Below, one piece after another: positions 821 to 40,086 of a DNA stretch of 64,000 nt (position 1 is its first letter; every line of letters begins with the position of its first letter). The stretch covers positions 23,932,001 through 23,996,000 of the forward strand of contig NC_043018.1 of NCBI RefSeq assembly GCF_006345805.1, given 5' to 3'. A program made the translations under genes and the position numbers. Source of the stretch: Octopus sinensis. Its lineage: Eukaryota. A model generated the notes under the pieces. That model searched no databases. It was given only the letters and a program-made list of their open reading frames with translations, and was not told the DNA's origin.

Positions 821-871
821 CTCTTGGCACAGATTCCATTCTATAACAGTCAACACTCCTCCGTTTGGACT
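821..871 (-). CDS. CASP8: Caspase exon entering the protease domain, 51 nt (xSKRRSVDCYRMESVPRG); gene continues beyond the left edge
   Basis: Acceptor ttttctctgtcttttaag| and donor |gtcagt. The Y-x-M-x-x-x-P-R-G motif is typical of the start of caspase p20 domains. The catalytic QACxG motif is not in the window, so active caspase versus cFLIP is unresolved. Confidence 0.75.
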
Positions 872-1388
872 CTTAAAAGACAGAGAAAACAGAAAATTGT
901 TTCATCATCATCATTATCATTATCCTCATCGTCAAACATCAGCTTTCCATGCTGGCATGGGTGGGAGGGTTTGACAGGTGCCGGTCAGGCAGAAGCCTGC
1001 ACCAGACTTTTGTGTCTGTTTTGGCAGGATTTTTACGGTTGGATGCCCTTCCTAACACCAACCACTCAGCAGAATGCATGTGTAGATATTTTTTAATATT
1101 TAATTTGAATGAGTCCAATACAATGTGGCCTCATAACTTACATACTCTTTGCTCTTTTACTCTTTTACTTGTTTCAGTCATTTGACTGCGGCCATGCTGG
1201 AGCACCGCCTTTAGTCGAGCAAATCGACCCTGGGACTTATTCTTTGTAAGCCCAGTACTTATTCTATCGGTCTCTTTTTGCCGAACCGCTAAGTGACGGG
1301 GACATGCTCACTTTTCATCTTTTCTCCCATCATCATCATGACAATACCTAATTCAAAACACCATGCAGTATTTATAAGTTAATGACAC

Positions 1389-1426
<38 letters not shown>

Positions 1427-1912
1427 CTTAAGGTCTGTTTTCCTTGCTGGTATGGGTTGGATGGCTTGTCAGGAGCTGCTAATGCCAGGAGCCACAGTTT
1501 TGGCTAGGTTTCTATGGCTGGATGCCCTTCCTAATGCCAACCACTTTATATATTCAAGAATTTGTAATGGACTATTAAGTCCAGTAATTGCAAGAACTGG
1601 GGTAAGAAGTTTAATACCTTGTTTTGTTTTTTGAAGAACAATGTTTTAGAGAAGCAGAAGATTGGCGGGCGTCTTCTGCTCCTTTTCGTTTATCATTTCA
1701 TCTCATTAATGCAATGTCCAGCCTGCAGCTACATCTGTGTAATGCCCTTGTGCAAATTATATGAATAAAAGTAGCTTGCTTACCAACCACATAGGTCCAG
1801 GTTCAGTCCCACTGCATGGCACCTTGGGCAAGTGTCCTCTACTAGAGCCTCGGGCCAACCAAAGCCTTGTGAGTGGATTTGGTAGACGGAAACTGAAAGA
1901 AGCTCGTCGTAT

Positions 1913-1943
<31 letters not shown>

Positions 1944-2939
1944 CATCATCATCATCATCGTTTAACGTCCGTTTTCCGTGCTAGCACGGGTTATATATAT
2001 ACATGTGTGTGTGTGTGTTTGTGTGTGTGTCGCTTGACAACTGATGTTGGTATGTTTACATCACCATAACTTAGCAGTTCGACAAAAGAGACCGATAGAA
2101 TAAGTACTAGGTTTGGCTTGCAATGAATAAGTCCTGGGGTCGTTTTGTTCAACTAAAAGGCAGTGCTCCAGCATGGCTGCAGTCAAATGACTGAAAGAAA
2201 TTATTAACTATTAGTGATACAACTGAAAACTTCCCATATCAGTGGTGCCTGCAAAAGCTGCAGAGGATGTAGGGCCTCGAGCAAACAAAACAACACAGAG
2301 TGGACTTACGAAAGTTAAAAAATGTAATTTAAGACGATGGACAAATATAAAATAAGAAAAGAGTAAAATATGGCCTTAGAGCCAAAAAGACAAGAATGGT
2401 AGGTAACGCTTAGAAGGAATCCTAAAGGATATAGGAAATAGCAAATAGCAAGAGAGAGAAATTTTTGCAACCAGATAGCTATGCAGCTGGTGTGAAAAAG
2501 GGAGAGAATGGAAGGAAAGCTGGCCACAGGTCATGTGGCAGCAGCAAGTAGAGGAGAAAGAGGACAAGAAAGAGGGAGAGAGAGAGAGAGAGAAAATAAA
2601 GGAAGGAATGAAGGTGGGGGAGGGAAAGGAGAAAGGCTACAAATACAAGTGAGAGGGCAACAGAGAGAAAAAAGGGTAAAGTGGACAGACTAGAAATAAG
2701 AGGGAAAGGGAGACAGAATGAAGGCAAAAGTAAATTCACACAGAATATATGTATAGACTTACTGTTAATAAAAGTGGGATGTGCATTGTATACCGTTACT
2801 GAATAAATGACAAAATGCATTGTAAATAAACAACAGATAAAAAACGTATACTTATACTAAGGATATAACCAGATGGGAAACAGACACAGAAGGCCCCTAA
2901 TTTTTCAACAGGTGTAAACCAAATGGTAATTCTCAGTTT

Positions 2940-3230
2940 TGCACCATTCGATGCCAGTGCCACCTTGACTGGCTTCTGTGCCGGTGGCACGTTAAAAGCA
3001 CCAACCGATCGTGGCCGCTGCCAGACTCCCCTGGCACCTGTGCCGGTGGCACGTAAAAAGCACCCACTACACTCGTAGAGTGGTTGGCGTAAGGAAGGGC
3101 ATCCAGCTGTAGAAACACTGCCAGATCAGACTGGAGCCTGGTGCAGCCTCCTGGCTTCCCAGACTCCGGTCGAACCGTCCAACCTGTGCTAGCGCAGAAA
3201 ACGGACGTTAAACGATGATGATGATGATGA
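2940..3230 (+). mobile_element. RTE-tail-type short repeat with (GAT)n tail (second abundant family)
   Basis: Core gagtggttggcgttaggaagggcatccagctgtagaaacactgccagatcagactggagcc ending in ggacgttaaacgatgatgat. Copies at ~905-1075, 1387-1545, 10890-11030, 21000-22080, 33725-34200, 39175-39470, 53120-53290 and 56060-56340. Confidence 0.75.
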
Positions 3231-3679
3231 TATAATAGGTGTAGGTGTGAGTCTGTGGCTAAGAGGTTTCCTTCTGAACCGCATGGTTTGGGGTTCAGCA
3301 CCGCGGCATGGCACTTTCGGTAAATGTCTTCTATTATAGCCTCAGGGCTTACCAAAGTGTTGTGAGAGAATTTGGTACACAGAAACAGTGAAATCCAGTC
3401 ATGTGTATGGAGGAGGGCATGTGGATGGGGGGGGGGGGTGTCTCCAAACTTGGAAATAGGTGAGATGATGAGAGGAAAGGCATCTGGTTGTAGAAAATCT
3501 GCCTCAATAAACTTCAGCCAACTCATGCAAGCATGGAAAATTGCATGTTAAAACGATGTTGATGATGTGTGTGAATGAACATATATATTATGCATACCAC
3601 ATGCATCATATACTTTATTAAAATACTTTATTTAGTTTAGAATTGTAAAAACACGAAATACAAAATAAATATTTCTCAC

Positions 3680-3724
3680 TTTCAGAACTTAAAGATTGTT
3701 GTGACTCCGGTTGTATCTTGGGGC
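3680..3724 (-). CDS. CASP8: Caspase linker microexon G, 45 nt (xPKIQPESQQSLSSE)
   Basis: ctaatatgcag| ... |gtgaga; phase 1-1 and open. Confidence 0.65.
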
Positions 3725-4995
3725 CTGCATATTAGAAGTATTCTATATTAGACAACATCATAGAGATTACAATACCAAAAAATACAGAGATAAAAAAATA
3801 TAAATGCAAATTAGAAAAAGAACAAAGAAAAGGAAAATAAAGAAAGTTTCTAGCAATGCAGAAAGTTCTACAAAAACCTTGATATTTCAGTTGCAAAGAC
3901 CCATACTAAGAAGGAAGATGAAATGACAAAAATTGATGTAAGTACACGTTTCTTGGACTACTTCCTTCTGAAGGTAGGCCTTTGTGTATGAAATATAAAG
4001 GTTTTTCTAAAACTTGCTGCATCGTTTGAAACTGTCTTTATTTTCCTTTTCTTTTTCTACTTCTGTACTACAATGCTTCAAGTGAATTACAACACTCTCA
4101 TAAATGAGAATGATTACTTGTTTTCAAGTGAGTACTTTATTCCAATAGACTAAGCATACTGAACTGCGCAACAGTATGAGATCCGTTGCTTATACGGTAC
4201 ATAAATAAGCATAACTGCTATGCATACGACATCAATTTAAAGGCACAAAGAGAAACGCTCATAGATAGATGTATGTATGTTCTCTTTTATTGTTTCAAGC
4301 CTTCTTGCAAGGCAGTAACTGGTTTCTAACAAAGATATGTGTGTGTGTGTGTTTGTGTGTGTGTATCACCTCATTATGATATTGCATGATTGTTGCAAAT
4401 GAATACAATTCATTCTCAATATTCTGCAAAAACATGTCTAATCACGGGAGAAAATTACCTTGCTTGGAAACAGATAAGGGTCGGTCACTAGAAGGGCATC
4501 TGGTTGTTGAAAATCTGATTCAATAAACTTCACCCAACCCATGCAAGCATGGAAAAATAAAAGACACCTTTCAGTCGTGAATAATCATGAGATTGCACCT
4601 AGAAAGTTCCCCTCCAAGGCACATGTCAGGGCAAGGTTGTTTATGGAAGACCAGCAGTCACCCATGCATAACAGACTCCCCTCTCTACAGCACTGGCCAA
4701 TGTTATCCAAGGGAAAGGAAATGGCTGATACACCTTGGCACCAGTGACATTGCAACTCATTTCTACAGCAGAGTAAACTGGAGCAACATGAAATAAAGTG
4801 TGTTGCTCAAGAGCAAAACACACAGCCCAGTCCAGGAATTGAACTTGCTACCTATTGATTGTAAGTCCAATGCTCTAACCACTGAGCCAGGAATATTTAT
4901 ATATCATGCATACAACATGCATTATCTAATTTATTTTAAAATTTTATCAAGTTAGAAAAGAAAAAGCACAAAATTCAAAATAAATAGATTCTGAC

Positions 4996-5049
4996 CAATG
5001 CATGTGAGAATACTCAGAGATTCTTGGGAAGGCAGTATTGTTGCTTCAC
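4996..5049 (-). CDS. CASP8: Caspase linker microexon F, 54 nt (xEATILPSQESLSILTCI)
   Basis: ctaatatgcag| ... |gtcaga; phase 1-1 and open. Confidence 0.55.
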
Positions 5050-5078
5050 CTGCATATTAGAGGTGTGTGTGTGTGTGT

Positions 5079-5123
<45 letters not shown>

Positions 5124-5405
5124 CCTTGTCATATTACATGATTGCTGTAAATGAATATCATTCATTTCCAATATTCTGCAAAGGCAAGTCTAACCATGGG
5201 GGAAAATTACCTTGCTTGGATGCAGGTAGGGGCTGATGACTAGAAGGGCATCTGGTTCGAGAAAATCAGCCTAAGTAAACTGGTGTGTGCGGGCGAACAT
5301 AAAGATTCCTATATTATGCATACCACATGCATCATATACTTTATTAAAATATTTTATGTAGCTTAAAATTGTAAAAACACGAAATACAAAATAAATATTC
5401 CTCAC

Positions 5406-5444
5406 TTTCAATTAGTGGTTGCGCCTTCACTGATACCTCTGGGC
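5406..5444 (-). CDS. CASP8: Caspase linker microexon E, 39 nt (xPEVSVKAQPLIE)
   Basis: ctaatatgcag| ... |gtgagg; phase 1-1 and open. Confidence 0.65.
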
Positions 5445-5659
5445 CTGCATATTAGAAGTATTCTATATTAGACAACATCATAGAGATTACAATACCAAAA
5501 AATACAGAGATGAAAAAATATAAATGCAAATTAGAAAAAGAAAAAAGAAAAGGAAAATAAAGAAAGCTTCTAACAATGCAGAAAGTTCTACAAAAACCTT
5601 TATATTTCAGTTGCAAAGACCCATACTAAGAAGGAAGATAAAATGACAAAAATTGATGT

Positions 5660-6076
5660 TGTAACAGGATCTGGTATCGGTATCACTGAAAGGGTGTCGA
5701 TCCGATCCCGTCACATACAATTTAGTTAGATATAACAGACGAATTCAGGTTATCGGTGAAAGACAGCAGTGTTGTTTATTATTCGTGATGGTGTACGTAT
5801 ATCTGATGGGAAAACGACAGCCAAATCTGTTGTACAGCTTCTTGTTCGTTGGTTGAAGTGGTTCGATGTCATCCGCGGCTGAGTCGGTGTGGTTATCAGA
5901 GACTACCAATGCACGTCTGTTTACGATGGCTGAAATGCCCAGAGAAGATGAATGAGTCTGTGTGCCTTAGGGGGTCAGTTTCCCGCACATGCGCATGGGG
6001 AAGACTTCCGGTGGCCACCCGGAAGTAGTCCCATTCTGCGCATGCGCGCTGAACCTTACACAGTAGCATCACTACA
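5660..6076 (-). mobile_element. Solo LTR (417 bp), Gypsy-like
   Basis: TGTA...TACA termini and a 4-bp TSD ATGT (5656-5659 / 6077-6080). Absent from the sister units (empty site ttgatgtaaatac). Carries NRF1-like GCGCATGCGC and ETS-like CCGGAAGT motifs at the right end and a minus-strand AATAAA at 5775-5780. Confidence 0.9.
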
Positions 6077-6829
6077 ATGTAAATACACATTTCTTGGACT
6101 ACTTCCCTCTGAAGGCAGGCCTTTGAGCCTGAAATATAAAGGTTTTTCTAAAACTTGCTGCATCGTTTGAAACTGTCTTTATTTTCCTTTTCTTTTTCTA
6201 CTTCTGTACTACAATGCTTCAAGTGAACTACAACACTCTCATAAATGAGAATGATTACTTGTTTTCAAGTGAGTACTTTATCCCAATAGACTAAGCATAC
6301 TGAACTGCGCAACAGTATGAGATCTGTTGTTTATACGGTACATAATTAAGCATAACTGCTATGCATATGACATCAGTTTAAAGGCACAAAGAGAAACGCT
6401 CATACATAGATGTATGTATGTTCTCTTTTATTTTCAGTTGTTTCAAGCCTTCCTGCAAGGCAGTAACTGGTTTCTGACAAAGATATGTGTGTGTGACCTT
6501 GTCATGATATTGCATGATTGTTGTTAAATGAATACCATTCATTCCCAATATTCTGCAAAAACATGTCTAACCACGTGGGAAAATTACCTTCCTTGGATTC
6601 AGGTAAGGGTTGATGGCTAGAAGGGCATCTGGTTGTAGAAAATCTGCCTCAGTAAACTTCATCCAATGAAAAATTGCATGTTAAAATGATGTTGATGACA
6701 CTGATGATGTGTATGAATGAACTTAAAGATTCATATATTATACATTCTACATGCCTTATATATTTTATTAAAATATTTCATTTAGATTAGAAAAGTAAAA
6801 ACATGAAATACAAAATAAATATTTCTCAC

Positions 6830-6874
6830 TTGAAGGTGTTGCAGATATTTGGGTCTCCAGTATTCCCATTCTGT
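6830..6874 (-). CDS. CASP8: Caspase linker microexon D, 45 nt (xRMGILETQISATPS)
   Basis: ctaatatacag| ... |gtgaga; lies 998 bp from the identical exon C. Confidence 0.65.
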
Positions 6875-7827
6875 CTGTATATTAGAGATATTCGTATTAG
6901 ACAGCATCATAGAGATTACAATACCAAAAAATACAGAGATAAAAAATATAAATGCAAATTAGAAAAAGAAAAAGAAAAGGAAAATAAAGAAAGTTTCTAG
7001 CAATGCAGAAAGTTCTACAAAAACCTTGATATTTCAGTTGCAAAGACCCATACTAAGAAGGAAGATAAAATGACGAAATTGATGTAAATACACATTTCTT
7101 GGACTACTTCCTTCTGAAGGTAGGCCTTTGAGCCTGAAATATAAAGGTTTTTCTAAAACTTGCTGCATCATTTGAAACTGTCTTTATTTTCCTTTTCTTT
7201 TTCTACTTCTGTACTACAATGCTTCAAGTGAACTACAACACTCTCATAAATGACAATGATTACTTGTTTTCAAGTGAGTACTTTATTGCAATGGACTCTG
7301 CATACTGAACTGTGCAACAGTATGAGATCCGTTGTTTATACGGTAGATAAATAAGCATAACTGCTATGCATATGACATCAGTTTAAAGGTACAAAGAGAA
7401 ATGCTCATAGATAGATGTATGTATGTTCTCTTTTATTGTTTCAAGCCTTCCTACAAGGCAGTAACTGGTTTCTAACAAAGATATGTGTGTGTGACCTTGT
7501 CATGATATTGCATGATTGTTGTTAAATGAATACCATTCATTCCCAATATTCTGCAAAAACATGTCTAACCACGTGGGAAAATTACCTTCCTTGGATTCAG
7601 GTAAGGGTTGATGACTAGAAGGACATCTGGTTGTAGAAAATCTGCCTCAGTAAACTTCATCCAATGAAAAATTGCATGTTAAAATGATGTTGATGACACT
7701 GATGATGTGTATGAATGAACTTAAAGATTCATATATTATACATTCTACATGCCTTATATATTTTATTAAAATATTTCATTTAGATTAGAAAAGTAAAAAC
7801 ATGAAATACAAAATAAATATTTCTCAC

Positions 7828-7872
7828 TTGAAGGTGTTGCAGATATTTGGGTCTCCAGTATTCCCATTCTGT
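7828..7872 (-). CDS. CASP8: Caspase linker microexon C, 45 nt (xRMGILETQISATPS)
   Basis: ctaatatacag| ... |gtgaga; phase 1-1 and open; identical to exon D. Confidence 0.65.
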
Positions 7873-8204
7873 CTGTATATTAGAGGTATTCGTATTAGAC
7901 AGCATCATAGAGATTACAATACCAAAAAATACAGAGATAAAAAATATAAATGCAAATTAGAAAAAGAAAAAGAAAAGGAAAATAAAAAAAGTTTCTAGCA
8001 ATGCAGAAAGTTCTACAAAAACCTTGATATTTCAGTTGCAAAGACCCATACTAAGAAGGAAGATAAAATGACGAAATTGATGTAAATACACATTTCTTGG
8101 ACTACTTCCCTCTGAAGGCAGGCCTCTGAGCCTGAAATATAGAGGTTTTTCTAAAACTTGCTGCATTATTATGAACTTGAAATACAAAATAAATAAATTC
8201 TCAC

Positions 8205-8654
8205 ATAGGCGCAGGAGTGGCTGTGTGGTAAGTAGCTTGTCTACAAACCACATGGTTCCGGGTTCAGTCCCACTGCGTGACATCTTGGGCAAGTGTCTTC
8301 TGCTATAGCCCCGGGCCAACCAAGCCTTGTGAGTGGATTTGGTAGACGGAAACTGAAAGAAGCCTGTCGTGTATATGTATATATATGTATGTGTGTGTGT
8401 TTGTGTGTCTGTGTTTGTCCCCCTAGCATTGCTTGACAACCGATGCTGGTGTGTTTACGTCCCCGTCACTTAGCGGTTCGGCAAAAGAGACTGATAGAAT
8501 AAGTACTGGGCTTACAAAGAATAAGACCCGGGGTCGATTTGCTCGACTAAAGGCGGTGCTCCAGCATGGCCGCAGTCAAATGACTGAAACAAGTAAAAGA
8601 GTAAAGAGTAAAAAGAGTATGTAATACTCGAAAAGTGCAGTATTGGTGCTTCCC
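8205..8654 (-). pseudogene. Linker microexon B (GEAPILHFSSIT...) split from its gtgaga donor by a SINE at ~8206-8616
   Basis: Same ttaatatgcag| acceptor as the sister exons at 8655 and homology to exon F. The gtgaga donor lies at 8204 on the far side of the SINE. Confidence 0.55.
8206..8616 (+). mobile_element. Octopus tRNA-derived SINE (dominant family), full length
   Basis: A-box-like GTGGCTGTGTGG, B-box-like GGTTCAGTCCC, central (TA)n/(TG)n and tail ccagcatggccgcagtcaaatgactgaaacaagtaaaagag. Confidence 0.9.
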
Positions 8655-9025
8655 CTGCATATTAAAGGTATGTGTCTTCTTGTCATGAAATAACATGATT
8701 GTTGTAAGAGAATATAATTCATTTCCAATATTCTGCAAAAATATGTCTAGCCATGGGGAAAAATTACCTTACTTGGGAACAGATAAGGATTGATGACAGG
8801 AAGAGCATCTGCCTCAATAAACTTCAGCCTCAATAAAATTTGCTTCAATAAACTTCAGCCAACCCATGCAAGCATGGAAAATTGCATGTTAGAGCGATGT
8901 TGATGATGTGTGTGAATGAACATAAAGATTCATATATTATGCATACCACAGGCATTATATATTTTATCAAAATATTTTATTTAGCTTAGAAAAGTAAAAA
9001 CATGAAATACAAAATAGATTCTCAC

Positions 9026-9070
9026 ATTCACGGCATGAAGATTCTTCGGAAGGCGAGCATCTTCTTGGGC
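9026..9070 (-). CDS. CASP8: Caspase linker microexon A, 45 nt (GPRRCSPSEESSCRE)
   Basis: ctaatatgcag| ... |gtgaga; phase 1-1 and open. Confidence 0.65.
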
Positions 9071-9192
9071 CTGCATATTAGAGAAATTCTATATTAGACA
9101 ACATCATAGCGATCACAATACCAAAAAATACAGAGATAAAAAAATATAAATGCAAATTAGAAAAAGAAAAAGAAAAGGAAAATAAAGAAATA

Positions 9193-9361
9193 TAGGCGCA
9201 GGAGTGGCTGTGTGGCAAGTAGCTCGCTAACCAACCACATGGTTCCGGGTTCAGTCCCACTGTGTGGCACCTTGGGCAAGTATCTTCTACTATAGCCTCG
9301 GGCCGACCAAAGCCTTGTGAGTGGATTTGGTAGACGGAAACTGAAAGAAGCCCGTTGTGTG

Positions 9362-9434
<73 letters not shown>

Positions 9435-9646
9435 TCGTGTGTCTGTGTTTGTCCCCCTAGCATTGCTTGACAACCGATGCTGGTGTGTTTATGTCCCCAT
9501 TACTTAACGGTTCGGCAAAAGAGACCGATAGAATAAGTACTGGGCTTACAAAAGAATAAGTCCTGGGGTCGAGTTGCTCGATTAAAGGCGGTGCTCCAGC
9601 ATGGCCGCAGTCAAATGACTGAAACAAGTAAAAGAGAGTAAAAGAG
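9193..9646 (+). mobile_element. Octopus tRNA-derived SINE, full length; truncates the last 1-kb unit
   Basis: Same family as 8206-8616. Other copies or fragments lie at ~1134-1305(-), 1780-2197(+), 13893-14020(-), 14879-15030(+), 32100-32330(-), 36381-37010(+, split), 38345-38690(-), 48850-49070(-), 58500-58875 and 61315-61470. Confidence 0.9.
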
Positions 9647-9863
9647 AATGTATCAGTGTGGGTGATAACCCTATGAACACTTGCTGTAAGGGGTGTCCAT
9701 CATTACCACACCTGTGCAAAAGAGTGTAGATCCCTCACAGGATTAAAAGGTTACATCTGTACTGCTTATGTATCAGAGAACAATCAAGAGATGGCGTCGA
9801 TTAATCAGTTGCAGCGATCATGTATGCATATATTTGAGAGCAATTAAAGTAGTGAGTACAGCT

Positions 9864-10090
9864 TTAACCCTTTAGTATTTAAACCGGCCATATCCGGCCA
9901 AAATAGCTAATCTGTTTTATGTTCAAACTGACCAGATCCAAGCTCTCACACCTACCCTACAATGTTATTCTACATTAAGTAATTACACCATCAAGATCTT
10001 GAAGATATGAGATAATGCATGATTAATTCAAATCAATGGGAATCAATAAGCATTATGTTTGATAGAATAATCTGAACACTAAAGGGTTAA
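9864..10090. mobile_element. piggyBac-type MITE (TTAA|CCC...GGG|TTAA)
   Basis: TTAA at both ends with CCCTTT/AAAGGG termini. Related copies at ~15931-16160, 16614-16840 and 16861-17089. Confidence 0.7.
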
Positions 10091-10663
10091 GGGTAGTGAG
10101 TACTGTTTACACTTACAGTGTACAAGGGAACTCTTTCTGTGCTGATGCTATGGCAAAAGCTCCCCCAACCCACCCTTTACAGTAACTGGTAAACATGCAG
10201 AGAAGTAGGATTGAAAGGTTCCTTAAGTCCTGTCCAACCAAGGACTTGACAACCTCTCTAATGCTTGTACCATGTAAAAATGTTTTTTTAACCCTTTCAA
10301 CACCAACCCAGCTGCAACTGCCTCTGGCTCTCTAGTACAAATGTCTTGTTTTCATAAGTTTTGAATTAAAATCTTGTACCAAACCTAAGTCACAGTTTAT
10401 GTTTCTAACACTTGCTTATTGATAACTTAGTTATTCTACTAAATTCTCTGTTATATTTAAAATTAATTGAAAGAAATTAAGTTAAACTAATATTCACATG
10501 CTATTATCTATAGCTTTATTTGATCCAAGGTAAACCATTCCAAAACAAAAAAAGAAAAAATAAGAGTTATTTCATGCTCCCTCGAAATTTCTAAATTCTT
10601 CTTTCCAATAACTGAAACATATGGAAGATAGATAACATATCAAAGCATAAAACAATTCCTCAC

Positions 10664-10726
10664 CTTCTCTCCCACAACTTTCTGGAATGGGCCCTCTTCT
10701 CTGTTCAACTGGAGGTCGACAGTATT
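10664..10726 (-). CDS. CASP8: Caspase linker exon, 63 nt, phase 1-1 (EYCRPPVEQRRGPIPESCGRE)
   Basis: Acceptor ttttccttttatatag| and donor |gtgagg; multiple of 3 and stop-free in the DED2 frame. Confidence 0.7.
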
Positions 10727-11030
10727 CTATATAAAAGGAAAACAATTTTAAAGTAACATTTATTGATTGAAAAGATTTTGTGTAACAAAAACACCTGATT
10801 CTTGTATTTTATATTTTCATCTTTTATTTTAACATCACATAACATAGTTAGAATCTTGTTTTTATATTTTCTTTATTTAATGTTCATTTTACATGCTGAC
10901 ATGGACTGGAGAGTTTGACAGGAACTGGCAAGGACAGGGGTTACACCAGGTCTCATTGTCTGTTCTGGCATGGACGCTACGTCTGGATGCCCTTCCTAAT
11001 GCCAACCACTTTACAGAGTGTACCGGATGC

Positions 11031-12210
11031 TTCTTACATGGCACCAGCACCAGTGCTTTTTACATGGTACCAGTACCAGTGCTTTTTATGTGACACCAGC
11101 ACCAATGCTTTTTACATGGTACCAGTACCAGTGCTTTTATGTGGCACCAGCACCAGTGCTTTTATGTGGCACCAGCACCAGTGCTTTTTATGTGACACCA
11201 GCACCAATGCTTTTTACATGGTACCAGTACCAGTGCTTTTATGTGGCACCAGCACCAGTGCTTTTTATGTGACACCAGCACCAATGCTTTTTACATGGTA
11301 CCAGTACCAGTGCTTTTTATGTGACACCAGCACCAATGCTTTTTACATGGTACCAGTACCAGTGCTTTTATGTGGCACCAGCACCAATGCCTTTTACATG
11401 GTACCAGTACCAGTGCTTTTATGTGGCACCAGCACCAGTGCTTTTTATGTGACACCAGCACCAATGCTTTTTACATGGTACCAGTACCAGTGCTTTTATG
11501 TGGCACCAGCACCAGTGCTTTTTATGTGACACCAGCACCAATGCTTTTTACATGGTACCAGTACCAGTGCTTTTATGTGGCACCAGCACCAGTGCTTTTT
11601 ACATGGTACCAGTACCAGTGCTTTTATGTGGCACCAGCACCAGTGCTTTTTACATGGTACCAGTACCAGTGCTTTTTATGTGACACCAGCACCAATGCTT
11701 TTTACATGGTACCAGTACCAGTGCTTTTATGTGACACCAGCACCAGTGCTTTTTATGTGACACCAGCACCAATGCTTTTTACATGGTACCAGTACCAGTG
11801 CTTTTATGTGGCACCAGCACCAATGCCTTTTACATGGTACCAGCACCAGTGCTTTTATGTGACACCAGCACCAGTGCTTTTTATGTGACACCAGCACCAA
11901 TGCTTTTTACATGGTACCAGTACCAGTGCTTTTATGTGACACCAGCACCAGTGCTTTTTATGTGACACCAGCACCAATGCTTTTTACATGGTACCAGTAC
12001 CAGTGCTTTTATGTGGCACCAGCACCAATGCCTTTTACATGGTACCAGCACCAGTGCTTTTATGTGGCACCAGCACCAATGCCTTTTACATGGTACCAGC
12101 ACCAGTGCTTTTACTGTGACACCAGCACCAGTGCTTTTAACATGGTACCAGCACAAGTGCTTTTTATGTGACACCAGCACCAGTACCCATGCTTTTTACA
12201 TGCTACCAGC
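11031..12210. repeat. Minisatellite of 20-22-bp monomers (ttttatgtgacaccagcaccaatgc / tttttacatggtaccagtaccagtgc) with ~63-bp higher-order pattern
   Basis: Direct tandem repetition that grows out of the gtgctttttacgtgccaccggcac motif of the adjacent RTE-tail repeat (10890-11030). Confidence 0.95.
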
Positions 12211-12879
12211 ACATAATAAAACAGAAAATTGGGTATCCACAGTAGTATTTTAAGGGCCCCTGGAAAAATTTTGCTTTAGATGTGAGTATTGGTATGTATT
12301 GCAAGAAACAGCTGGGTTTCTTTCTCTAACATTTTACATAGTTCGACCTACACAAGTTAATGTGAGAAAAACAAAATAGGAATTTCTATAAAACTAACTT
12401 TTAAACATTGAATGACTTCAAGGGCCACCAGAATAAAATAGTAACCAAAGGGGTCCATAGATAAAAAATGGTTGAGAATCCCTGGTTTAGTTAAAAAAAA
12501 AATCAATGCAAGTACTTTTACTTTAAGTCAGGTACTTATTTTATCAGTCATACTTACCAAATTGCTAAGTCATAGGGACATAATCAAACCAACATTGGTT
12601 ATATATATACACATATATACATGTGACTGCAAGTGGTTATGTATGCGTGATTAACCCAAAAAGGGTTGGAAATGGTGTGTCCTTGAGAAAAATTAATTTG
12701 ATTTTCAAAATTTATGTCCCACAGATAATGTCATCCATAAATAATAATAAAAAATATAATTTGCTCTGAGAAATAACTCAACTTTTAGATCAGCAACTCT
12801 CCTACTCTCTATCTGCCACCATGAATCTATCTCAATCTATTATAAGTAGCATAAGTAGGCTGGTTACACCGCTGGCATA

Positions 12880-13410: not shown

Positions 13411-14308
13411 TTGGTCACCTAGGTAATGCCAACCACTCTGAGAGTGTAGTGGGTGCTTTTTACGTGCCAATGGCACAGGGGCCATAAGAAGCTGGCATTG
13501 ACCACGATTGGATGGTGCTTTTATGTGCCACCAGCATGGGAGCCAGAGGGGAGCTGGCATCAACCACATTTGGACGGTGCTTTTATGTGCCACCGGCACA
13601 GGGGGCCAGATAGGTAGAGCTGGTATCAGCCACAACTACAATTTTCAATTGATTGTGGTTTGATTTGATTTGATCTTGGTGTTGATGATGTACTTGACTC
13701 AATAGGTCTTCTCAAGCACAGCATGTCACCCTATGATTCAAAGGTACTTTTTGAGTGGGCTGGTTATGCGACACTGGTATAGACTACAGCTGTGATCACA
13801 CTTGATTTGCCGGGTCTTCTCCGTCTCACAGCATATCTCCAGAGGCCTCTGTGAGGCCCAATGCTCAAAGGTCATACTTCACCACCTCATCCCTACAATG
13901 GGCTTCTTTCAGTTTCTGTCTACCAAATTCACTCACAAGGCTTTGGTCGGCCTAAGACTATAGTAGAAGACACTCGTCCATGTGGTTGGGAAGCAAGCTT
14001 CTTACCACACAGCCACTCCTACATATATATACACAGAAATATGGTAGTGAAAGTGTTAAAACATGTCATTATTGTTGTTTAGTGCTGGGTCAGCTCAGAT
14101 CAAGCAGATTGTAATTCTGCTTGCATTCCACCTGTGACCATTCCATTAATTTATATATCCATAACTACATTAATCAAAATATCATATGTTTTTTTTAAGT
14201 TAGTAGGGTGTGGTTTTCAGTGATATTTGGCAGCTATTTCTAGTAGATCAATCCACCACATTGAACACCTACACCCACACATAGACAAGCACACATAAAA
14301 AAACACAT

Positions 14309-14489: not shown

Positions 14490-14704
14490 CTTCTAATTTA
14501 CTTGCTAAATCTTTTCTGTTAATTGAAGACAAAGTATTCACAAGAGAGCCAAAAGACCTTTCATTTATAACATCAGCATCCAGCAAGATAGTAAAGATTG
14601 ACAAAGCATCAATATTATTTTCTTTTATGTGACTCCGGTAAAAAAACCTCAGTTTTTTAACATCCTCTGATCTCAGATCCAATGCCAAATCAAAGAGTAA
14701 TGAT
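14490..14704 (-). CDS. CASP8: Caspase-8/10- or cFLIP-like gene, DED2 exon
   Basis: Acceptor aaatttcag| and donor |gtaagc; 215 nt, phase 2 to 1. Encodes RSLLFDLALDLRSEDVKKLRFF...LSSINRKDLASKLE, a second DED with RxDL. Confidence 0.8.
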
Positions 14705-17473: not shown

Positions 17474-17783
17474 CTAAAAGGATTTAATTCATTTGGTTCA
17501 AAATCATCAATGTTAGACGAACCAGAATTCAATATTTTCAATAAATCAATCCTATGAATTTTCTTGAGACATTTTAATAAAAATTTGTAGTCATTTGAAG
17601 TGATAATATGGTAGTTTGAAAGTGCATCGATTATATTTAAGCCATTATGCTTTTCTATTTCTCCTGCTGGTAAGATATCATGGCACAGGAACTTCAAATA
17701 ACTTACATCCCTCTCTCGAAGGTTTTCAGCTATTTTGACTAAAGCAGAACTTAGATTGTGGTCAACATCCATCATTATCGTAT
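17474..17783 (-). CDS. CASP8: Caspase-8/10- or cFLIP-like gene, DED1 exon (probable first coding exon; ATG at 17775)
   Basis: Acceptor ttctctttaccag| at 17784 and donor |gtaagt at 17473. Translation (LSSALVKIAENLRERDVSYLKFLCHDILPAGEIEK...LLKCLKKIHRIDLLKIL) fits a death-effector domain including the RxDL motif. It splices in phase 2 to the DED2 exon (PF-R-SLLFDL). Confidence 0.8.
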
Positions 17784-26872: not shown

Positions 26873-28162
26873 CGAGGGGCGTTCAATATGTAATGCCCCT
26901 GACCCACTTCCCATAGCAGTAGAGCAACGAAACTTGGCACAGTTATTAGTCTTTTTCTACCTAGGAACCACCCAGAGTTACGCATTTCTCTCATCGTGTG
27001 ATGCAGCTCTGGAGACCGTTTTTGTAGAAGACCCCAGCTTGGTCCTTCAACCACGACGTGACTTCAGAAATCAAGGCTGCATCATTTGGAAAACACTTTC
27101 CTTTCAAAAACAACTTCATGGCTGGGAAGAGGTGAAAATCAGAGGGTGCAAGGTCAGGAGAGTAGGAGGATGGGGGAGGAGTTCATAGCCGCACGCCTGT
27201 GCTTCTGATCTGGCGACAGCGAGTTGTGGACCGGAGCGTTGTCCTGCAGGAGGAGGATGCCTTTGCTGATCTTGTCCCGCCTCTTGATTTTGATAGCTTC
27301 TCTTAATTTCCTCAAAAGTGAAGCATAATATGCTCCTATAATTGTGGTACCCTTTGCCAGGAAATCTATCATCACTACTCCGTCCTGGTCCCAGAAGACT
27401 GTGAGCATGACCTTGCCAGCGGAGCGCTGCACCCTTGCCTTCTTTGGAGGAGGTGAGTCACGGTGCTTCCACTGCATTGACTGGGCTTTGGTCTCTGGAT
27501 CATAGTGATGGACCCAGGTTTCATCCTGTGTAATCAGTCTTTTGAAAAAATTTGACTCATCTTCTTGGCATATCCCCAAATTCATCCTCGAGCACTCAAC
27601 GCGTTCTTGCTTCTGGAAAGATGTGAGCAACCTGGGAATCCATCTGGCAGACACCTTTTGCATATGCAAATTGTCATGAATGATAGTTTCCACAGACCCG
27701 GTACTAATCTTGACCTCATGGGCTATTTGGTGAATAGTTATGCGTCGATCTTCCAAAATGGCAGCCTCAACTTGACGGACAGATGCCTCATCAATGGAAG
27801 AAGGGGGCGACCAGATCTGGGAGCTGTTTCCACAGAGTTCCGACCATGTTTGAATTCATGATGCCAGCGTTTTACAAGGTCATATGATGGGGCATCATCA
27901 CCATAAGTTACTTTCATTTCATCAAAAGTCTCCCGTGGTGTGCGTCCTTTCAAATATAAAAACCGGATCACTGCTCGACACTCAACAGGCTCCATTTCAC
28001 ACTTGACTCAGTTCAAACACCTGTAAATCTGAAACCACAATTAGTTCAGAGCTGTAATTTTCCCCTTAATCTATAGAGATATAAGCAATTGCACATGCAA
28101 AATTTCAGCTAGATCAAACAATTGCAAGTAGGTCAGAGGCATTACTTATTGAACGTCCCTCG
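26873..28162 (-). mobile_element. Full-length (1290 bp) mariner transposon, frameshifted transposase
   Basis: TA TSDs at 26871-72 and 28163-64; imperfect TIRs cgaggggcgttcaatatgtaatgcc / ggcattacttattgaacgtccctcg. Motifs WIPRLL, TQDETW, QDNAPVH and YSPDLAPSDF are spread over 3 frames (27738-27995, 27154-27756, ~26950-27180). Confidence 0.95.
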
Positions 28163-28277
28163 TATATTCCAGTTCTTTTATATTGGACGTTCGTCCGTCA
28201 TATACTCTATCAATTCCATCTGGTCTATCACATTTGGCAAATTGTCATAACGTACATATTGCGCTACATAAACAGCA

Positions 28278-29540
28278 TTAAATATCCTTTTCAATTTTGT
28301 AAATGTCTCTTTTTCTATAACTACCCCTTTTCACATTGTCACCATACAGTTTTGGCAACTTCACCCTGTTCAATACTTTCCTACCTGCAAGTCTTTTTTC
28401 CACTTCTGTGTCTTTGATATACATCACGAATGCTTTCAGGTTTTTTCCTACAGGTCTTCTTCCCTTTTTACAAGCTTCCAACTGCTCTTTCACTTTTGTC
28501 TCCCATTCTTGGTCAGCCTCTGTCATTGTCTGCTCTCTCGCCTTCTCTTTTACTTCCTTTTCTTTGCATGTTCTCTCTTCTTTTTCTTCTGTTATCTTGC
28601 TTTTGATTTTTTTCTTTTTTAGAACTTTCGGTGGTGATTCCACCCTTGTTCTCTTCCTATCTTCTGTTCTTTCATCCTCTGCACTTGCACGTTCTTCTTC
28701 CACATCCTCAATTAGCTGCTCCTCCGTTTGCGCTTCCACTGCTTTCGTTTCCTCCTGCACTTCTCCCTCCTCCACACACGTATCTTTCCACTCCTTCGTT
28801 ACAGCCTCCGGTGCTATCGTTTTCTCCAGCGGGCACACATCCTTCATGTGGCCTCTTAATTTGCAATTATAACAGACTGGGGGTCTTCCCTCTACCACGA
28901 CTCTAAACCGTGTCTCATCAGGGAAGACCAACTCCTCCGGGATGTTGTACAGGTCTGGCATGGTTATATGTGCCAGAACCTGCACCGCATATCCCCACCA
29001 TTTAACTTCTGTTGACTTCTCCACCTTCAACACTTCTACACTTTCCTTGCAGTTGAAAACTACTGCCGCTAATATCCTCTCCATGTTAAGTTCGGGCGAA
29101 ATCCTACTAATTCTTATTCTGACTGCCCTCTTTCCGCAGTAACTAGGTAATAAAGTCCAACTTTCAGATTTCAGAATCTTTGTCGCATTCTTTCTTGCTT
29201 CATTTTCATTTTTAAAGTGTACCACCACTGTGGCATATTTCCATCCTCTGTTGAAAAAGGTAGGTTCACCCTCAATTCCTTGCAGACATTTCTCTATTTC
29301 TTCCGTCTCTGCTACTTCTATTTTTCTTGACGCCACACACCATGTCCTGTATGTTATCATACGTTTCTCCGCATTGTTTTCTTCTTCTTCGGACGGTGTG
29401 ACTCTCACGCAGTTACCCTCCCTCTTCAAACTGTCGAAATACTTTTCTAAAGTCTTCTTCTCGACTACCACTTCTTCCATTTCTAGTTCACTCGCAACCA
29501 GGCCTCTGCCTGCTGCTCTCGCATACGTCTGGTCTTGCAT
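28278..29540 (-). CDS. Retroelement ORF1/gag-like protein (420 aa from ATG 29540), CX2CX4HX4C zinc knuckle and E/K-rich tail
   Basis: VVVEGRPPVCYNCKLRGHMKDVCP resembles Tx1/L1-type ORF1 proteins; the frame is uninterrupted. Confidence 0.85.
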   Translation of the reverse strand: MQDQTYARAAGRGLVASELEMEEVVVEKKTLEKYFDSLKREGNCVRVTPSEEEENNAEKRMITYRTWCVASRKIEVAETEEIEKCLQGIEGEPTFFNRGWKYATVVVHFKNENEARKNATKILKSESWTLLPSYCGKRAVRIRISRISPELNMERILAAVVFNCKESVEVLKVEKSTEVKWWGYAVQVLAHITMPDLYNIPEELVFPDETRFRVVVEGRPPVCYNCKLRGHMKDVCPLEKTIAPEAVTKEWKDTCVEEGEVQEETKAVEAQTEEQLIEDVEEERASAEDERTEDRKRTRVESPPKVLKKKKIKSKITEEKEERTCKEKEVKEKAREQTMTEADQEWETKVKEQLEACKKGRRPVGKNLKAFVMYIKDTEVEKRLAGRKVLNRVKLPKLYGDNVKRGSYRKRDIYKIEKDI

Positions 29541-29941
29541 TTTCAAAATCTCCAACTCCAAAAAACATAGGTCGGCTGGTGATATTTGCTTCGACTTCAC
29601 TATTGTATATATCTATATTCAGTGAAGTCTATTCACTGATTATCAAAATAAGAAATATTGAATTTCTAAATCTCTTGTAGAGACATGTACGGTGGTGGGG
29701 CGATAGAATGGTTGTATACTGTCAATCTAACAAGAACGTGACAGTAGGGGGTACACCACCGCTGTATAGCCCTAGGAAGAATCGAACGCCTCCTGATGGC
29801 TTTGACACATTTTCCCCTGTGTCCCTATATACATTTACGAAGGGGAGACAAACACCCCCGGCTGCCGGAACTGCATCTATATATATATATGAAAAAACAA
29901 GTCAAGATAGAAAATGCTAAAATAATTTTATAAAGAACATT

Positions 29942-31682: not shown

Positions 31683-32317
31683 TATCATGATAGAAAAGAA
31701 CTTCATTATCCTTTACCTGTGTGAGACATCAATCCATCAGAAATTCAATTCGGGAATAAAGTTGGATTTATTTTTTCCCCAGGATTAAAAGTTTTCGTGG
31801 TATCTATGCGATTTCTCCCCTTAAAGTTATCTCCCTTCAAAAAGTGTAACAAATTCACTTCCTGGTTCGACTGCTAGAAACAGCAGCTACATCAGCAATC
31901 GTTAAATAATACGCTCACCACAGTTGTACCCTTTTGTTTTTTTAGCATTGTGAGTATTGCAGATGAAACTACAGCAATTCGCATTGAAAGTTATTAAAAT
32001 CCTGTTGTTAATCATACATCTGGAAATTGTATTTTGTACGTCCTGTTAATTTTCACTACCACCGCAATCCACTTGTCTCTCTCCCCCCTCTCTCTCTCTA
32101 ATTTGTTTCAGTCATTTGATTGCGGCCATACTAGAGCACCGCCTTTAATCGAATCGAACAAATTGACCCCAGAACTTATTCTTTGTAAGCCTGCCTAGTA
32201 CTTATTCTATCGTTCTCTTTTGCAGAACCGCTAAGTTACGGGGGTGTAAACACAACAGCATCGTTTGTCAAGCGATGTAGGGGGGGACAAATACACACAT
32301 ACAACAACACACACACA

Positions 32318-33722: not shown

Positions 33723-35224
33723 AATCATCATCATCATCATCATCATCGTTTAACATCCATTTTCCATGCTAGCATGGGTTGGACGGTTTTGACTGATGGC
33801 TGGCAACCAGATGGCTGCACCAGGCTCCAGTCTTGATCTGGCAGAGTTTCTACAGCTGGATGCCCTTCCTAACGCCAACCAAGCCGAGAGTGTAGTGGGT
33901 GCTTTTTACATGCTACCTGCACGGGGGCCAGTCAGGTGGTACTGGCAATGACCTTGCTTGAATCTTTTACACGTGCCACCGACACAGGTGCCAGTGAAGC
34001 GACGTTGGTAACGATCACGCTCGAAATGGTGCCCTTTTACATGCCATGGGTATGGAAGCCAGTTGGCTGCTCTGGCAACGATCACAATGATCACGCTCAG
34101 ATGGTGTTCTTGGCACCCTACTAGCACAGGCATAAGTGCCAGTAAGGTGACGCTGGTAACGATCATACTCGAATAGCCGCTCTGTCAACGATCACACTCG
34201 TATGGTGCTCTTTGCACCCCGCTAGCACGGATGCCAGTCATCGAAATGGTTTTTCAATATTTAAAATTTTTAAATCATATTTATTTATGGTATATGAATT
34301 TCTTAAAATTGTTTGTTATGGTCATGTGATGTGTATGGACAAGGATGGCTGTGTAAAGAAGTGCAAATCTCAAAATATGGATGGAACCTGTGGCAGAAGT
34401 AGACCCAAGAAGACATGGGATGAGGCGGCGAAGCATGATCTTCAAACTTTGAGCTTCACAGAGGCAATGACAAGTAACCAAAAACCTTTGGTGGTATGTT
34501 GTGTCTGAGAAAACCCATCAAACCAAGTGAAATCATAGTCATGGCTGATGATGGCATCACATAACTGTCACCTACACTGGTGGCACGTAAAGAGCAATTT
34601 TCAAGCAGTGAGCCAAAGTGGGTGCTTTTTACATGTCACCTGCACGGGGGCCAGTCAGGCAGTACTGGCAATGACCTCGCTTGAATCTTTTACACGTGCC
34701 AGTGAAGCGACATTGGTAACGATCACGCTCGAAATGGTGCCCTTTTACATGCCACGGGTATGGAAGCCAGTTGGCTGCTCTGGCAACGATCACAATGATC
34801 ACGCTTTTGAGTGTTGGGTTTCACGGAGGCAATGACTGAGATCTTTGGCATTATGTTGTGCTTGAGAAGACCCACCAAGCTGAGCAAAATCACAGTCGCG
34901 GTGGATACTGAATAATGGTGCCCATGCTGGTGGTATGTAAAAGCACCCATTACACTCTCAAAGTGGTTGGCATTAGTTAGGGCATCCAGCCATAGAAAAC
35001 CATGCCAAATGAGACTGGAGTCCGGTGCAGTCTTCCAGCTTACCAGCCCTAATCAAACAGTCCAACCCATGCCAGCATGGACAACAGACATTAAATGATG
35101 ATGATGGTGATGTTTCTAAAGGTTTGATTGTCTTTCAATCATTCTGCCTCACCAGTTACTACCCTCTTCCGCCACACCGCTTGGGAACCACTGATATAAG
35201 GGTTACTGGTTACACTACATTATT

Positions 35225-39477: not shown

Positions 39478-39885
39478 CATGGAGGAGGTAGTGCTACCCT
39501 GGGTCAAGAGGGTGGCTGTGGGAAGACCCTATGTCTGGCAAGAGGACTCTACCCAATGCCACACAAGCAGGAGAACCCAGTCATGACTACATCACCCCTA
39601 ACTACCTAGACTGCAAACCCTTCAATTATGTGTGGGGCACAGTTAAGCGACAGCCAACAAAACTCCTTCTAACACCAAAGATGAACTGAAGGCAAGGATT
39701 ATGGCAGCATTCACCAACAAGGAGACCATCCAAAAGAGTTGCAGGAAACTCCGAAATCGTCTAGAGGTCATGGTTGAAGACAGTGGCGATTTTATCGAAA
39801 TTTACTCTTTAGTATTTTAAGATATTTTTATGTAATTTTCGTAAGTATATGTTAAAATAAGATGTTAGGGTTATTTTCATTTTTG
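39478..39885 (+). mobile_element. Degenerate Tc1/mariner-superfamily transposase C-terminal fragment
   Basis: EEVVLPWVKRVAVGRPYVWQEDSTQCHTSRRTQ plus a degraded SPD-N-P-DY-VWG remnant. Confidence 0.7.
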
Positions 39886-40055
39886 CATAATTTACATGAC
39901 AGTTTATTCACTGCATCCTATATATACATCATACATATATACATTATACACACACAACTATATACATGTAAACATATGCACACATATAAATACATACACA
40001 TATTTACATAAATACATGTGTATGTATACGTTTGTTCATTTGTTTAATGTATGCG

Positions 40056-40086
<31 letters not shown>

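Follow-up and report, generated by a model that had tools for sequence, protein, structure and literature searches.

The 64,000-nt stretch of Octopus sinensis DNA analysed here (the window) maps inside locus L002, and the gene that it exposes is LOC115223204, annotated as "caspase-8" and encoded on the minus strand; all features below lie on that strand and are given by their window positions. The translations of the in-window exons equal the RefSeq protein sequences. The first coding exon, ATGTCTCACACAG (31717-31729), encodes M-S-H-T plus 1 nt, which matches the start of the RefSeq proteins (MSHTDT...) and the gene start of L002. It is followed by the DED1 exon (17474-17783), the translation of which corresponds to RefSeq residues 5-108, and by the DED2 exon (14490-14704), which ends at a phase 1 intron. 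Pfam recognises two DED stretches in the protein (PF01335, E=7.8e-28), both of which align with the DEDs of human caspase-8, together with a Peptidase_C14 domain (PF00656, E=4.9e-47), and the AF2 model contains two confident helical bundles, corresponding to the DEDs, and a confident protease. The catalytic residues are kept, in that SHG and QAC align with H317 and C360 of human caspase-8, as are the residues of the S1 pocket (Arg in QRLG, Gln in IQAC and Arg in SYRC). The best full-length matches are caspase-8/10-like proteins at ~30% identity, and the protease domain is only ~30-35% identical to that of vertebrate caspase-8. Judged from these sequence and domain comparisons, LOC115223204 is a divergent caspase-8-like DED-DED-C14 gene, as the first-pass annotation had proposed. 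That annotation had also entertained a cFLIP-like pseudo-caspase, which we ruled out because the catalytic His and Cys are both present in the alignment to human caspase-8. The QACxG pentapeptide, the integrity of which had been raised as a point to check, retains QAC, and with it the catalytic Cys, but lacks the canonical final Gly: it reads QACQN in O. sinensis and O. vulgaris and QACQG in the aligned homologues. At the p10 C terminus, the O. sinensis models end in ...SDEG, whereas the O. vulgaris DNA continues in frame past SDEG into a KQLP...LRKMLRF segment that resembles the C termini of the homologues; the two assemblies are one T apart at this point, within a T-run.

Between DED2 (14704-14490) and the exon encoding KSKRRSVD|CYRMESVPRG, where p20 starts (871-821), the first-pass annotation had reported seven symmetric, stop-free exons of 63, 45, 45, 45, 39, 54 and 45 nt. 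Their positions, AG acceptors, GT donors and 1-1 phases were all re-derived: each is a multiple of three, every intron is in phase 1, and all seven are open in the frame that links the two outer exons. The 63-nt exon (EYCRPPVEQRRGPIPESCGRE; 10664-10726) lies in unique sequence and is found in 12 of 12 isoforms. The other six (39-54 nt) bear out the claim that most of the exons sit in duplicated units, since each occupies one of the ~1-kb intronic units of a tandem array (3475-9190) recognised by self-BLAST and repeat families; no copy of this unit was found elsewhere in the 64-kb window or in L001. In the order of transcription, the units are F, the remnant B', E, D, C, B and A, and the array is broken by three insertions, two of them SINE-like and the other 417 nt long. 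Microexon F (45 nt; PRRCSPSEESSCRE; 9026-9070) is present in all isoforms. Microexons E (45 nt; RMGILETQISATPS; 7828-7872) and D (45 nt; 6830-6874) have the same sequence, and C (39 nt; PEVSVKAQPLIE; 5406-5444) and A (45 nt; PKIQPESQQSLSSE; 3680-3724) are optional cassettes. Two units, B and B', have decayed. The microexon-like B (54 nt; EATILPSQESLSILTCI; 4996-5049) is open and symmetric, and has a GTCAGA donor and a CA repeat in place of the pyrimidine tract; B' (8626-8654) is a pseudo-exon, a SINE-truncated remnant of the 54-nt type that keeps its acceptor, has an internal deletion and has had its donor destroyed by the SINE-like insertion. A further phase 1-1 exon that the first-pass annotation had not listed, cassette H (36 nt, encoding TVYNAHPTFIN; 2763-2798), lies outside the tandem units.

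How are these exons used? The isoform evidence consists of RefSeq (Gnomon) models, 12 predicted isoforms with 10 different linker versions of 73-115 aa. Each model joins 3-5 array exons, on which ground a mutually exclusive cluster of the Dscam type was rejected. All 12 models contain the 63-nt exon, F and no fewer than one of the D/E pair; they vary in whether the pair is complete and in whether C, A and exon H, which lies outside the array, are included, and H is present only alongside A. Exon B appears in none of the 12. The idea that any subset of the cassettes can be spliced in frame is thus borne out in part, in that the models combine them in 10 ways, but it does not extend to the 54-nt exon. 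Because every exon is symmetric, each cassette could be included or skipped independently, and in our proposed mechanism the spliceosome would make that choice for each one on its own.

The linker region (residues 184-293) has AF2 pLDDT values of 25-33 and no secondary structure, and is predicted to be intrinsically disordered. The cassette peptides are rich in Ser, Glu, Pro and Gln; the paralogous peptides otherwise share little. Outside the SVD site, none of the 115 unique linker residues is Asp, although 13 are Glu; elsewhere, Asp accounts for 7.5% of residues (P about 1e-4 to 3e-3). The sole Asp, in the SVD|C motif of the exon at 821-871, aligns with D216, the prodomain-processing site of human caspase-8. 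The lack of any other Asp suggests that the linker is constrained not to gain further sites that caspases could cleave. Between the DED pair and this one processing site, the tether would owe both its composition and its length (73-115 aa) to splicing, and after cleavage at SVD|C the variable segment would remain on the prodomain side. The linker may, we infer, tune the distance from the DEDs to the protease.

What history do the units record? The flanks (±120 nt) of units A, C, D/E and F are 89-95% identical, consistent with the initial estimate of ~90% or more, but those of the 54-nt unit B are only 74-77% identical to the flanks of the others. The paralogous exons of the former are 50-67% identical, far below their flanks (p=1e-6 to 1e-10), so that the first-pass observation of exon bodies much more diverged than the introns around them stands, and its ungapped counts of 24/45 and 25/45 matches were reproduced. 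In full-unit alignments, 45-nt windows reach their lowest identity at the exon in every pair except D vs E, and identity drops precisely at the splice sites. The divergence of exons is not proportional to that of their flanks: exons differ by 0% where the flanks differ by 1-2.5%, and by 26-50% where the flanks differ by 5-11%. In unit B, flank divergence (~25%) is comparable to exon divergence (22-44%).

In an independent assembly of O. vulgaris, all of these units recur in unchanged order at 98-99% identity, together with an additional one, so that the comparison of copy number across Octopus species that had been called for gives one unit more in O. vulgaris than in O. sinensis. The extra unit is chimeric: a stretch of ~730 nt that contains the exon is 100% E-type, and the sequence on either side of it is A-type. 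It is by unequal recombination within the conserved flanks, therefore, that the array changes. We also noted an intronic inverted repeat in unit D (6961-7210), with two 104-nt arms that are 81% complementary, which in the pre-mRNA precedes the exon by 90-340 nt. The RNA fold predicted for it has an energy of -116.8 kcal/mol (z=-15.4), and its 3' arm includes a pyrimidine-rich stretch that all units share at 96-99% identity. A counterpart with 94-nt arms lies in unit A (3824-4054). Between units, identity is 95-100% in the upstream flank, where the hairpin lies, and 80-92% in the downstream flank.

From these observations, we consider it probable that the locus holds an in-frame, optional array derived from tandem units, in which the exon types are old and the flanks have been homogenised by recombination. 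A ~1-kb unit, which carries a single phase 1-1 exon of ~45 nt, an intronic hairpin and splice signals that are strong and conserved, has multiplied in tandem via unequal recombination. The exon types would be old, and the flanks would appear young since recombination between units keeps them alike, a process that the long intronic palindrome possibly promotes. Three observations lead to this reading: exons do not diverge in proportion to their flanks; in unit B, which was not homogenised, the flanks are about as diverged as the exons; and the upstream flank with the hairpin is more alike between units than the downstream flank. The homogenisation itself is read from one recombinant unit. The distinct exon types would have been retained by selection or by chance. 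For the old divergence of the exons, two explanations are still in play, and diversifying selection is one of them.

Alternatively, the flanks might record the true, fairly recent age of each duplication, every new cassette having undergone a short adaptive burst followed by stability. Comparisons involving exon D, with pN of 0.54-0.66 vs pS of 0.16-0.31 and few third-position changes ([10,8,1], [8,9,3] and [11,9,4] by codon position), lean towards past positive selection, as such bursts would predict; over all exon pairs, pN/pS ranges from 0.8 to 4, at 13-14 codons per pair and with uncertain alignment. B and B' are about equally similar in exon and flank (~88-90%), a hint that flank divergence may record the true age of duplication, and the F-C flanks (79-91% identical) likewise fit a block duplication dated by its flanks. 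A test for short-tract conversion since the species split found no clear case, 2 of only 8 informative sites being compatible with it, and quartet site patterns gave no clear mosaic. However, this account requires four independent bursts, each of ~15-20 substitutions within 45 nt, and must accept three D-type copies that had no burst at all. Exon divergence follows a star-like pattern and bears no relation to the distance between flanks, and flank identity is strongly heterogeneous (73-100%), both of which speak against it. We therefore regard recent duplication with episodic bursts as possible but doubtful.

Could the cassettes simply be neutral passengers, that is, in-frame insertions tolerated in a disordered linker, their inclusion splicing noise and the array a by-product of an unstable repeat? 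The predicted disorder of the whole linker, paralogous peptides alike only in their S/E/Q/P richness, the decay of one unit (B) and one remnant (B'), and the difference in copy number between sister species would all be compatible with this. Nevertheless, every exon in use has stayed open and in frame, even after indels of -6 and +9 nt; the splice signals and ~100 nt of upstream intron are 96-99% identical across all units; and the linker has no Asp beyond the processing site, despite its 13 Glu. Neutrality is thus an unlikely explanation. The opposite extreme is more speculative still: the cassettes might be functionally distinct linker modules, each positively selected after duplication, with DED1 and p20 also under positive selection between the sister species. 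Splicing would then vary tethering, processing or targeting at death-signalling platforms, pathogen inhibitors or proteases being a possible driver, and the hairpins would act as splicing switches.

The first-pass annotation had preferred a rapidly evolving combinatorial spacer, in which ongoing diversifying selection, of the kind known from conotoxin and other venom genes, makes the exons of recent duplicates diverge. The contrast of exons with flanks at the splice sites and the excess or equality of pN over pS in most exon pairs, together with the scarcity of third-position changes in comparisons with exon D, are what this process would leave among paralogues. Between O. sinensis and O. vulgaris, moreover, the whole gene has a dN of 0.0216 vs 0.0085 for introns (p=4e-4), and selection therefore acts on LOC115223204; it is in DED1 and the N-terminal p20, however, rather than in the linker, that evolution is fast today. 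Orthologous microexons differ between the two species at 2/273 nt (0.73%) and introns at 76/8921 (0.85%), and exon/intron rate ratios of at least 5 (P=7e-4) or at least 9 (P=2e-7) are rejected. Exons D and E are identical (45/45), although their units differ at 27/1093 positions (2.5%), and the extra O. vulgaris copy, D', makes three D-type copies with identical exons in two species. Finally, the pS of 0.52 in comparisons with exon F exceeds flank divergence, which positive selection alone on recent copies does not predict. At present, the array exons evolve no faster than introns, and the terms "hypervariable" and "rapidly evolving" are not supported: over recent time, exon divergence does not exceed that of introns, although it does among the old paralogues. 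We consider continuing diversifying selection improbable. An artefact, whether of assembly (a repeat collapsed or expanded) or of annotation (exons called wrongly), is conceivable in principle for units D and E (97% identical) but highly implausible, given the shared units, order and extra copy in the independent O. vulgaris assembly and the presence of the exons in annotated proteins of both species.

Several known systems resemble parts of this array. Human caspase-8 isoforms 8A and 8B, among ten or so splice variants, differ by 15 aa at 217-232, near D216 (PMC11853578); therefore, alternative splicing of a caspase-8 linker is not new in itself. The octopus protein shares the DED-DED-caspase architecture, and its cassettes also encode ~15 aa just upstream of the D216-aligned Asp. 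In contrast to the single human segment, however, it has 5-6 duplicated cassettes in conserved 1-kb tandem units, and homology of the cassettes to the 8A/8B segment is unlikely. Tandem exon duplication with alternative splicing is a general class, the events of which have been catalogued (PMC8373072). Octopus exons have likewise multiplied within a gene while staying in frame, and they are alternatively spliced. In the classical functional cases, the copies are mutually exclusive and substitute for one another within a folded domain, whereas the octopus copies are additive, several occurring together in a predicted disordered linker.

The Schistosoma micro-exon genes (MEGs), to which the first-pass annotation had likened the cassettes, have short symmetric exons that yield protein variants by differential splicing, ~80% of the coding region consisting of exons of 6-36 bp, and their products are secreted or at the surface (PMC5825161). 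The likeness holds for short, symmetric cassettes and no further: octopus exons of 36-63 nt make up ~20% of a ~1.5-kb CDS for an intracellular caspase that begins directly with DED1 and has no secreted or surface architecture, and membership of this class was rejected. Exons more diverged than introns among duplicates have been described in venom and host-defence genes, among them in primate segmental duplications (PMC3906575) and three-finger toxin genes (PMC2474615). The octopus paralogues share this pattern, with its break at the splice sites, but in those systems rapid change continues between close species, whereas here orthologous exons show no excess over introns (2/273 vs 0.85%) and the youngest copies are identical; the comparison with conotoxins thus applies to the old paralogues. 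In HLA-DRB1 exon 2, deeply diverged types lie within more similar introns, which is explained by recombination or conversion in the flanks while exon types persist. Diverged exon types within more similar introns are also what the octopus array presents, and we offer the parallel as a mechanistic analogy: HLA-DRB1 types are alleles at one locus under balancing selection, whereas the octopus cassettes are paralogues in one transcript.

We confirm that the array exists, and it is an unusual feature in a caspase gene. As the first-pass annotation had supposed, our literature search found no published description of an octopus caspase linker microexon array, although the isoforms were already in RefSeq, and nothing known about caspases is overturned. 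Caspase-8 activation depends on DED filament assembly, which brings the protease domains together; because activation needs this proximity, the tether between DEDs and protease is mechanistically relevant. The gene offers a natural length series, ten or more linker lengths in steps of 12-15 aa, with which the effect of the tether on activation and processing could be tested. It is also a clean evolutionary example of exon and intron divergence decoupled within a single gene. Internal controls are at hand in young copies that are identical, in a unit that has decayed and in the additional, recombinant unit of a sister species, and the array can therefore help to separate adaptive bursts after duplication from the concerted evolution of flanks.

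The coding exons of LOC115223204 in the window all lie on the minus strand, and their translations are those of the RefSeq proteins of this gene, which carry the name caspase-8 or, in some isoforms, caspase-7; the window maps within L002, the O. sinensis gene locus. A first coding exon of 13 nt (31729-31717) is followed by the exons encoding DED1 (17783-17474, 310 nt) and DED2 (14704-14490, 215 nt). The linker opens with a 63-nt exon of unique sequence, E63 (10726-10664), and continues through the six microexons of the tandem array, F (9070-9026), E (7872-7828), D (6874-6830), C (5444-5406), B (5049-4996) and A (3724-3680), which are 45, 45, 45, 39, 54 and 45 nt long, respectively. A 36-nt cassette outside the array, H (2798-2763), precedes the last exon in the window (871-821, 51 nt; KSKRRSVDCYRMESVPRG). 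The exon sizes and positions listed in the first-pass annotation match exactly those located here, H being absent from its list. Because the introns after DED2 are all phase 1 and the linker exons are all open, with lengths that are multiples of three, any subset of them can be joined in frame. The intron between DED2 and E63 also holds a large minisatellite (11028-12213; periods of 51, 77 and 205 nt, approximately 15-23 copies, approximately 86% identity), and a shorter block related to it lies at 13452-13635.

How are these cassettes used? RefSeq lists 12 isoforms (X1-X12), which are automatic gene models. Among the ten with an intact protease domain, the linker is the sole difference: every one of them includes E63, F and a D/E copy, whereas inclusion varies for C, A, H and the other D/E copy. 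H is found only alongside A, and C and A are never both missing. The resulting linkers span 73-115 aa. The combinatorial use of symmetric cassettes proposed in the first-pass annotation is thus upheld by the phase-1 frame and by these linker-variant gene models; no transcript-derived (Logan) fragments of LOC115223204 turned up. Microexon B occurs in none of the RefSeq models. Its donor (GTCAGA) is weaker, its pyrimidine tract is replaced by a CA repeat, and its flanks are far more diverged. A second B-type exon, B′ (8654-8626), has been wrecked by a SINE-like insertion.

The protein contains two DEDs and a Peptidase_C14 domain according to Pfam. In an alignment with human caspase-8 (8ybx), both catalytic residues, His (in SHG) and Cys, are present together with the S1 Arg/Gln/Arg residues, and the Asp of the SVD/C site aligns exactly with human D216, the prodomain processing site. 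With His and Cys both in place, the alternative identity of cFLIP, which had been entertained from the sequence, is ruled out. The active-site pentapeptide, encoded by an exon outside the window, is QACQN rather than QACxG in both octopus species (proteins P0010 and P0005), whereas all aligned DED-caspase homologues have QACQG. Word-based protein searches with the DEDs and linker, with DED2, the linker and the start of p20, and with the caspase domain returned identities above approximately 40% only in O. sinensis and O. vulgaris. When 1.84 billion representatives were searched exhaustively with HMMER, no hit fell between the cluster of the gene itself and approximately 34-38% identity, and the best relatives beyond the O. 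vulgaris orthologue among these representatives share 30-38%. The protein is thus an outlier. The last coding exon, also outside the window, reads GAAGGTTAGG in O. sinensis (L002, ~45488-45495), leading to a stop after ...SDEG; in the orthologous O. vulgaris locus (L001, ~57318-57326), there is one extra T and the frame continues through LGDKQLPTHRHQLRKMLRF, the counterpart of the C-terminal strand in other caspases. Either one of the assemblies has a homopolymer error here, or the truncation is genuine.

Self-comparison revealed a period of approximately 1 kb across 3475-9190. Among units A, C, D/E and F, the flanks within 120 nt on either side of the exon are 89-95% identical, whereas the exons are 50-67% identical (Fisher p from 1e-6 to 1e-10). 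This identity break coincides exactly with the AG and GT. Across all units, the 100-180 nt or so upstream of each exon are 96-100% identical; identity is lower in the downstream flank (80-92%) and drops to 73% in some intronic stretches. In whole-unit alignments of six pairs, no intronic 45-nt window matches the dissimilarity of the exon. The claim that the exons have diverged more than their flanking introns among paralogous units therefore survives proper alignment, because the exon is the most dissimilar 45-nt window and the break falls at the splice sites. We regard the observation as real and statistically solid.

In each unit, the intron also contains a long inverted repeat, whose two arms (approximately 100 nt each, 81% complementary) lie 90-340 nt before the microexon in the direction of transcription (RNA folding energy -116.8 kcal/mol, z = -15.4). 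Its 3′ arm is a pyrimidine-rich stretch nearly identical among all units. The arms lie at 6961-7064 and 7107-7210 in unit D and at 3824-3917 and 3961-4054 in unit A; the repeat is truncated in units E (~7959-8177) and F and is split in unit C by a 417-nt insertion (5660-6076). It might be a MITE-like element, serve as a structure in splicing or editing, or be a hot spot for recombination. Copies of a single SINE-like dispersed repeat occur at 8179-8620 and 9190-9650, with related ones at ~1140-1310 and 1769-2200; two copies within the array interrupt the hairpins in units E and F and have eliminated the donor side of B′. Rfam and tRNA scans of the array gave no matches.

Is the linker evolving rapidly at present? 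The O. vulgaris locus is collinear with that of O. sinensis at 98-99% identity. Between these species, there are 2 differences, both nonsynonymous, in the 273 nt of the six orthologous microexons, and 76 in the 8921 nt of intron from the same interval. The microexon/intron rate ratio is therefore approximately 0.9; a ratio of 3 is rejected at P = 0.03, one of 5 at 7e-4 and one of 9 at 2e-7. Units D and E have identical exons, although the units as a whole differ at 27 of the 1093 positions aligned. On these counts, the hypervariable, fast-evolving linker envisaged in the first-pass annotation is not borne out.

How, then, did the exons come to differ so much more than the introns around them? 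The O. vulgaris array consists of seven units, F, E, D, C, B, D′ and A, of which D′ is a clean chimera: approximately 700 nt of A type, approximately 730 nt of E type including the exon, and A type again. Its middle ~730 nt is 100% identical to O. sinensis unit E, and its junctions fall within the most conserved flank segments. From this structure, unequal recombination in the flanks evidently shifts whole units as blocks, and the sister species have different copy numbers. We considered that the exon types might be old, and that recombination between units would have kept the flanks similar. First, exon divergence is unrelated to that of the flanks, being 0% at 1-2.5% flank divergence and 26-50% at 5-11%. 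Second, in the B unit, which has lost the long flanks, flank divergence (approximately 25%) and exon divergence (22-44%) are comparable. Third, flank identity is uneven and peaks over the long inverted repeat. Fourth, synonymous divergence in comparisons with F exceeds flank divergence, and recombination between units is itself proven by D′. Alternatively, recent duplications might each have been followed by a burst of adaptive change. This is supported by pN being at least equal to pS and by the scarcity of third-position changes in D comparisons; B and B′ are also equally diverged in exon and flank, and short-tract conversion since the species split is not clearly seen, although only 8 sites are informative (2 of them compatible) and power is low. 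Quartet site patterns for mosaic flanks offered too few informative sites. We lean tentatively towards old exon types with flanks kept similar by recombination, or a mixture of both processes; recent duplication with adaptive bursts is the less probable account. An assembly artefact is rejected, since a second assembly, that of O. vulgaris, is collinear with the array, and so is the exonisation of transposon copies, because in neither species does the unit recur as a dispersed repeat within 64 kb: no further copy was found in the rest of the 64-kb window or in the O. vulgaris locus of 67 kb.

Elsewhere in the window, transposon-derived-looking long open frames lie on the minus strand at 27157-29612 (a transposase-like frame at 27855-27157 and a large acidic/basic ORF at 29612-28281) and at 47433-49786, with reverse-transcriptase-like fragments at ~47-50 kb; neither these nor the single tRNA-like Rfam match (52743-52804) has any connection to the array. 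An uninterrupted ORF of 1539 codons (40305-44921, minus strand) has condensin-II subunit D3-like domains (Cnd1, HEAT), and the O. vulgaris neighbour gene is annotated with NCAPD3 Pfam families. So long an intron-free stretch is unusual for an NCAPD3-like gene in an animal genome.

The fast-changing parts of the gene between the species are DED1 (17783-17474), with 7 nonsynonymous differences and 1 synonymous, and the N-terminal p20 (13 and 0; L002 exons at ~35039-35107 and ~39806-40129), whereas DED2 shows no difference. Over the folded domains, L002 and L001 differ by 21 nonsynonymous and 4 synonymous changes, and dN is 0.0216 versus an intron rate of 0.0085 (p = 4e-4). The differences cluster in DED1 and the N-terminal p20, and they suggest that the caspase itself has been under positive selection between the sister species.

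Alternative splicing near D216 is not new for caspases, since in humans a 15-aa segment at positions 217-232 distinguishes caspase-8A from 8B, and approximately ten splice variants are known (PMC11853578). Exons diverging faster than introns among duplicates also have precedents (PMC3906575, PMC2474615). The octopus gene does not fit the definition of a Schistosoma-type MEG (PMC5825161), its array is not a mutually exclusive exon cluster and, unlike venom-like systems, it is not currently accelerating. What is new here is the tandemly duplicated array of additive cassettes; our literature searches, in agreement with the first-pass annotation, found no description of this locus or array. Other invertebrate DED caspases that we inspected also have long linkers, but these lack such a repeat and contain Asp.

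AlphaFold2, run on a 14-sequence alignment, predicts the DEDs and the protease domain with confidence, whereas residues 184-293, the entire microexon-encoded stretch, have no secondary structure (pLDDT 25-33). Ser (18), Glu (13), Pro (13) and Arg (11) are abundant in the linker, which in isoform X1 (residues 181-295; exons 10726-821) includes a single Asp, at the processing site, versus 7.5% Asp in the rest of the protein. Zero Asp among the 115 unique linker residues outside the SVD site has P of approximately 1e-4 to 3e-3, and the unused exon B likewise has none. This composition may mean that the exposed tether is constrained from acquiring further caspase-cleavable sites. Upon cleavage at SVD/C, the variable segment would stay with the DED prodomain, and linker length might plausibly influence caspase activation.
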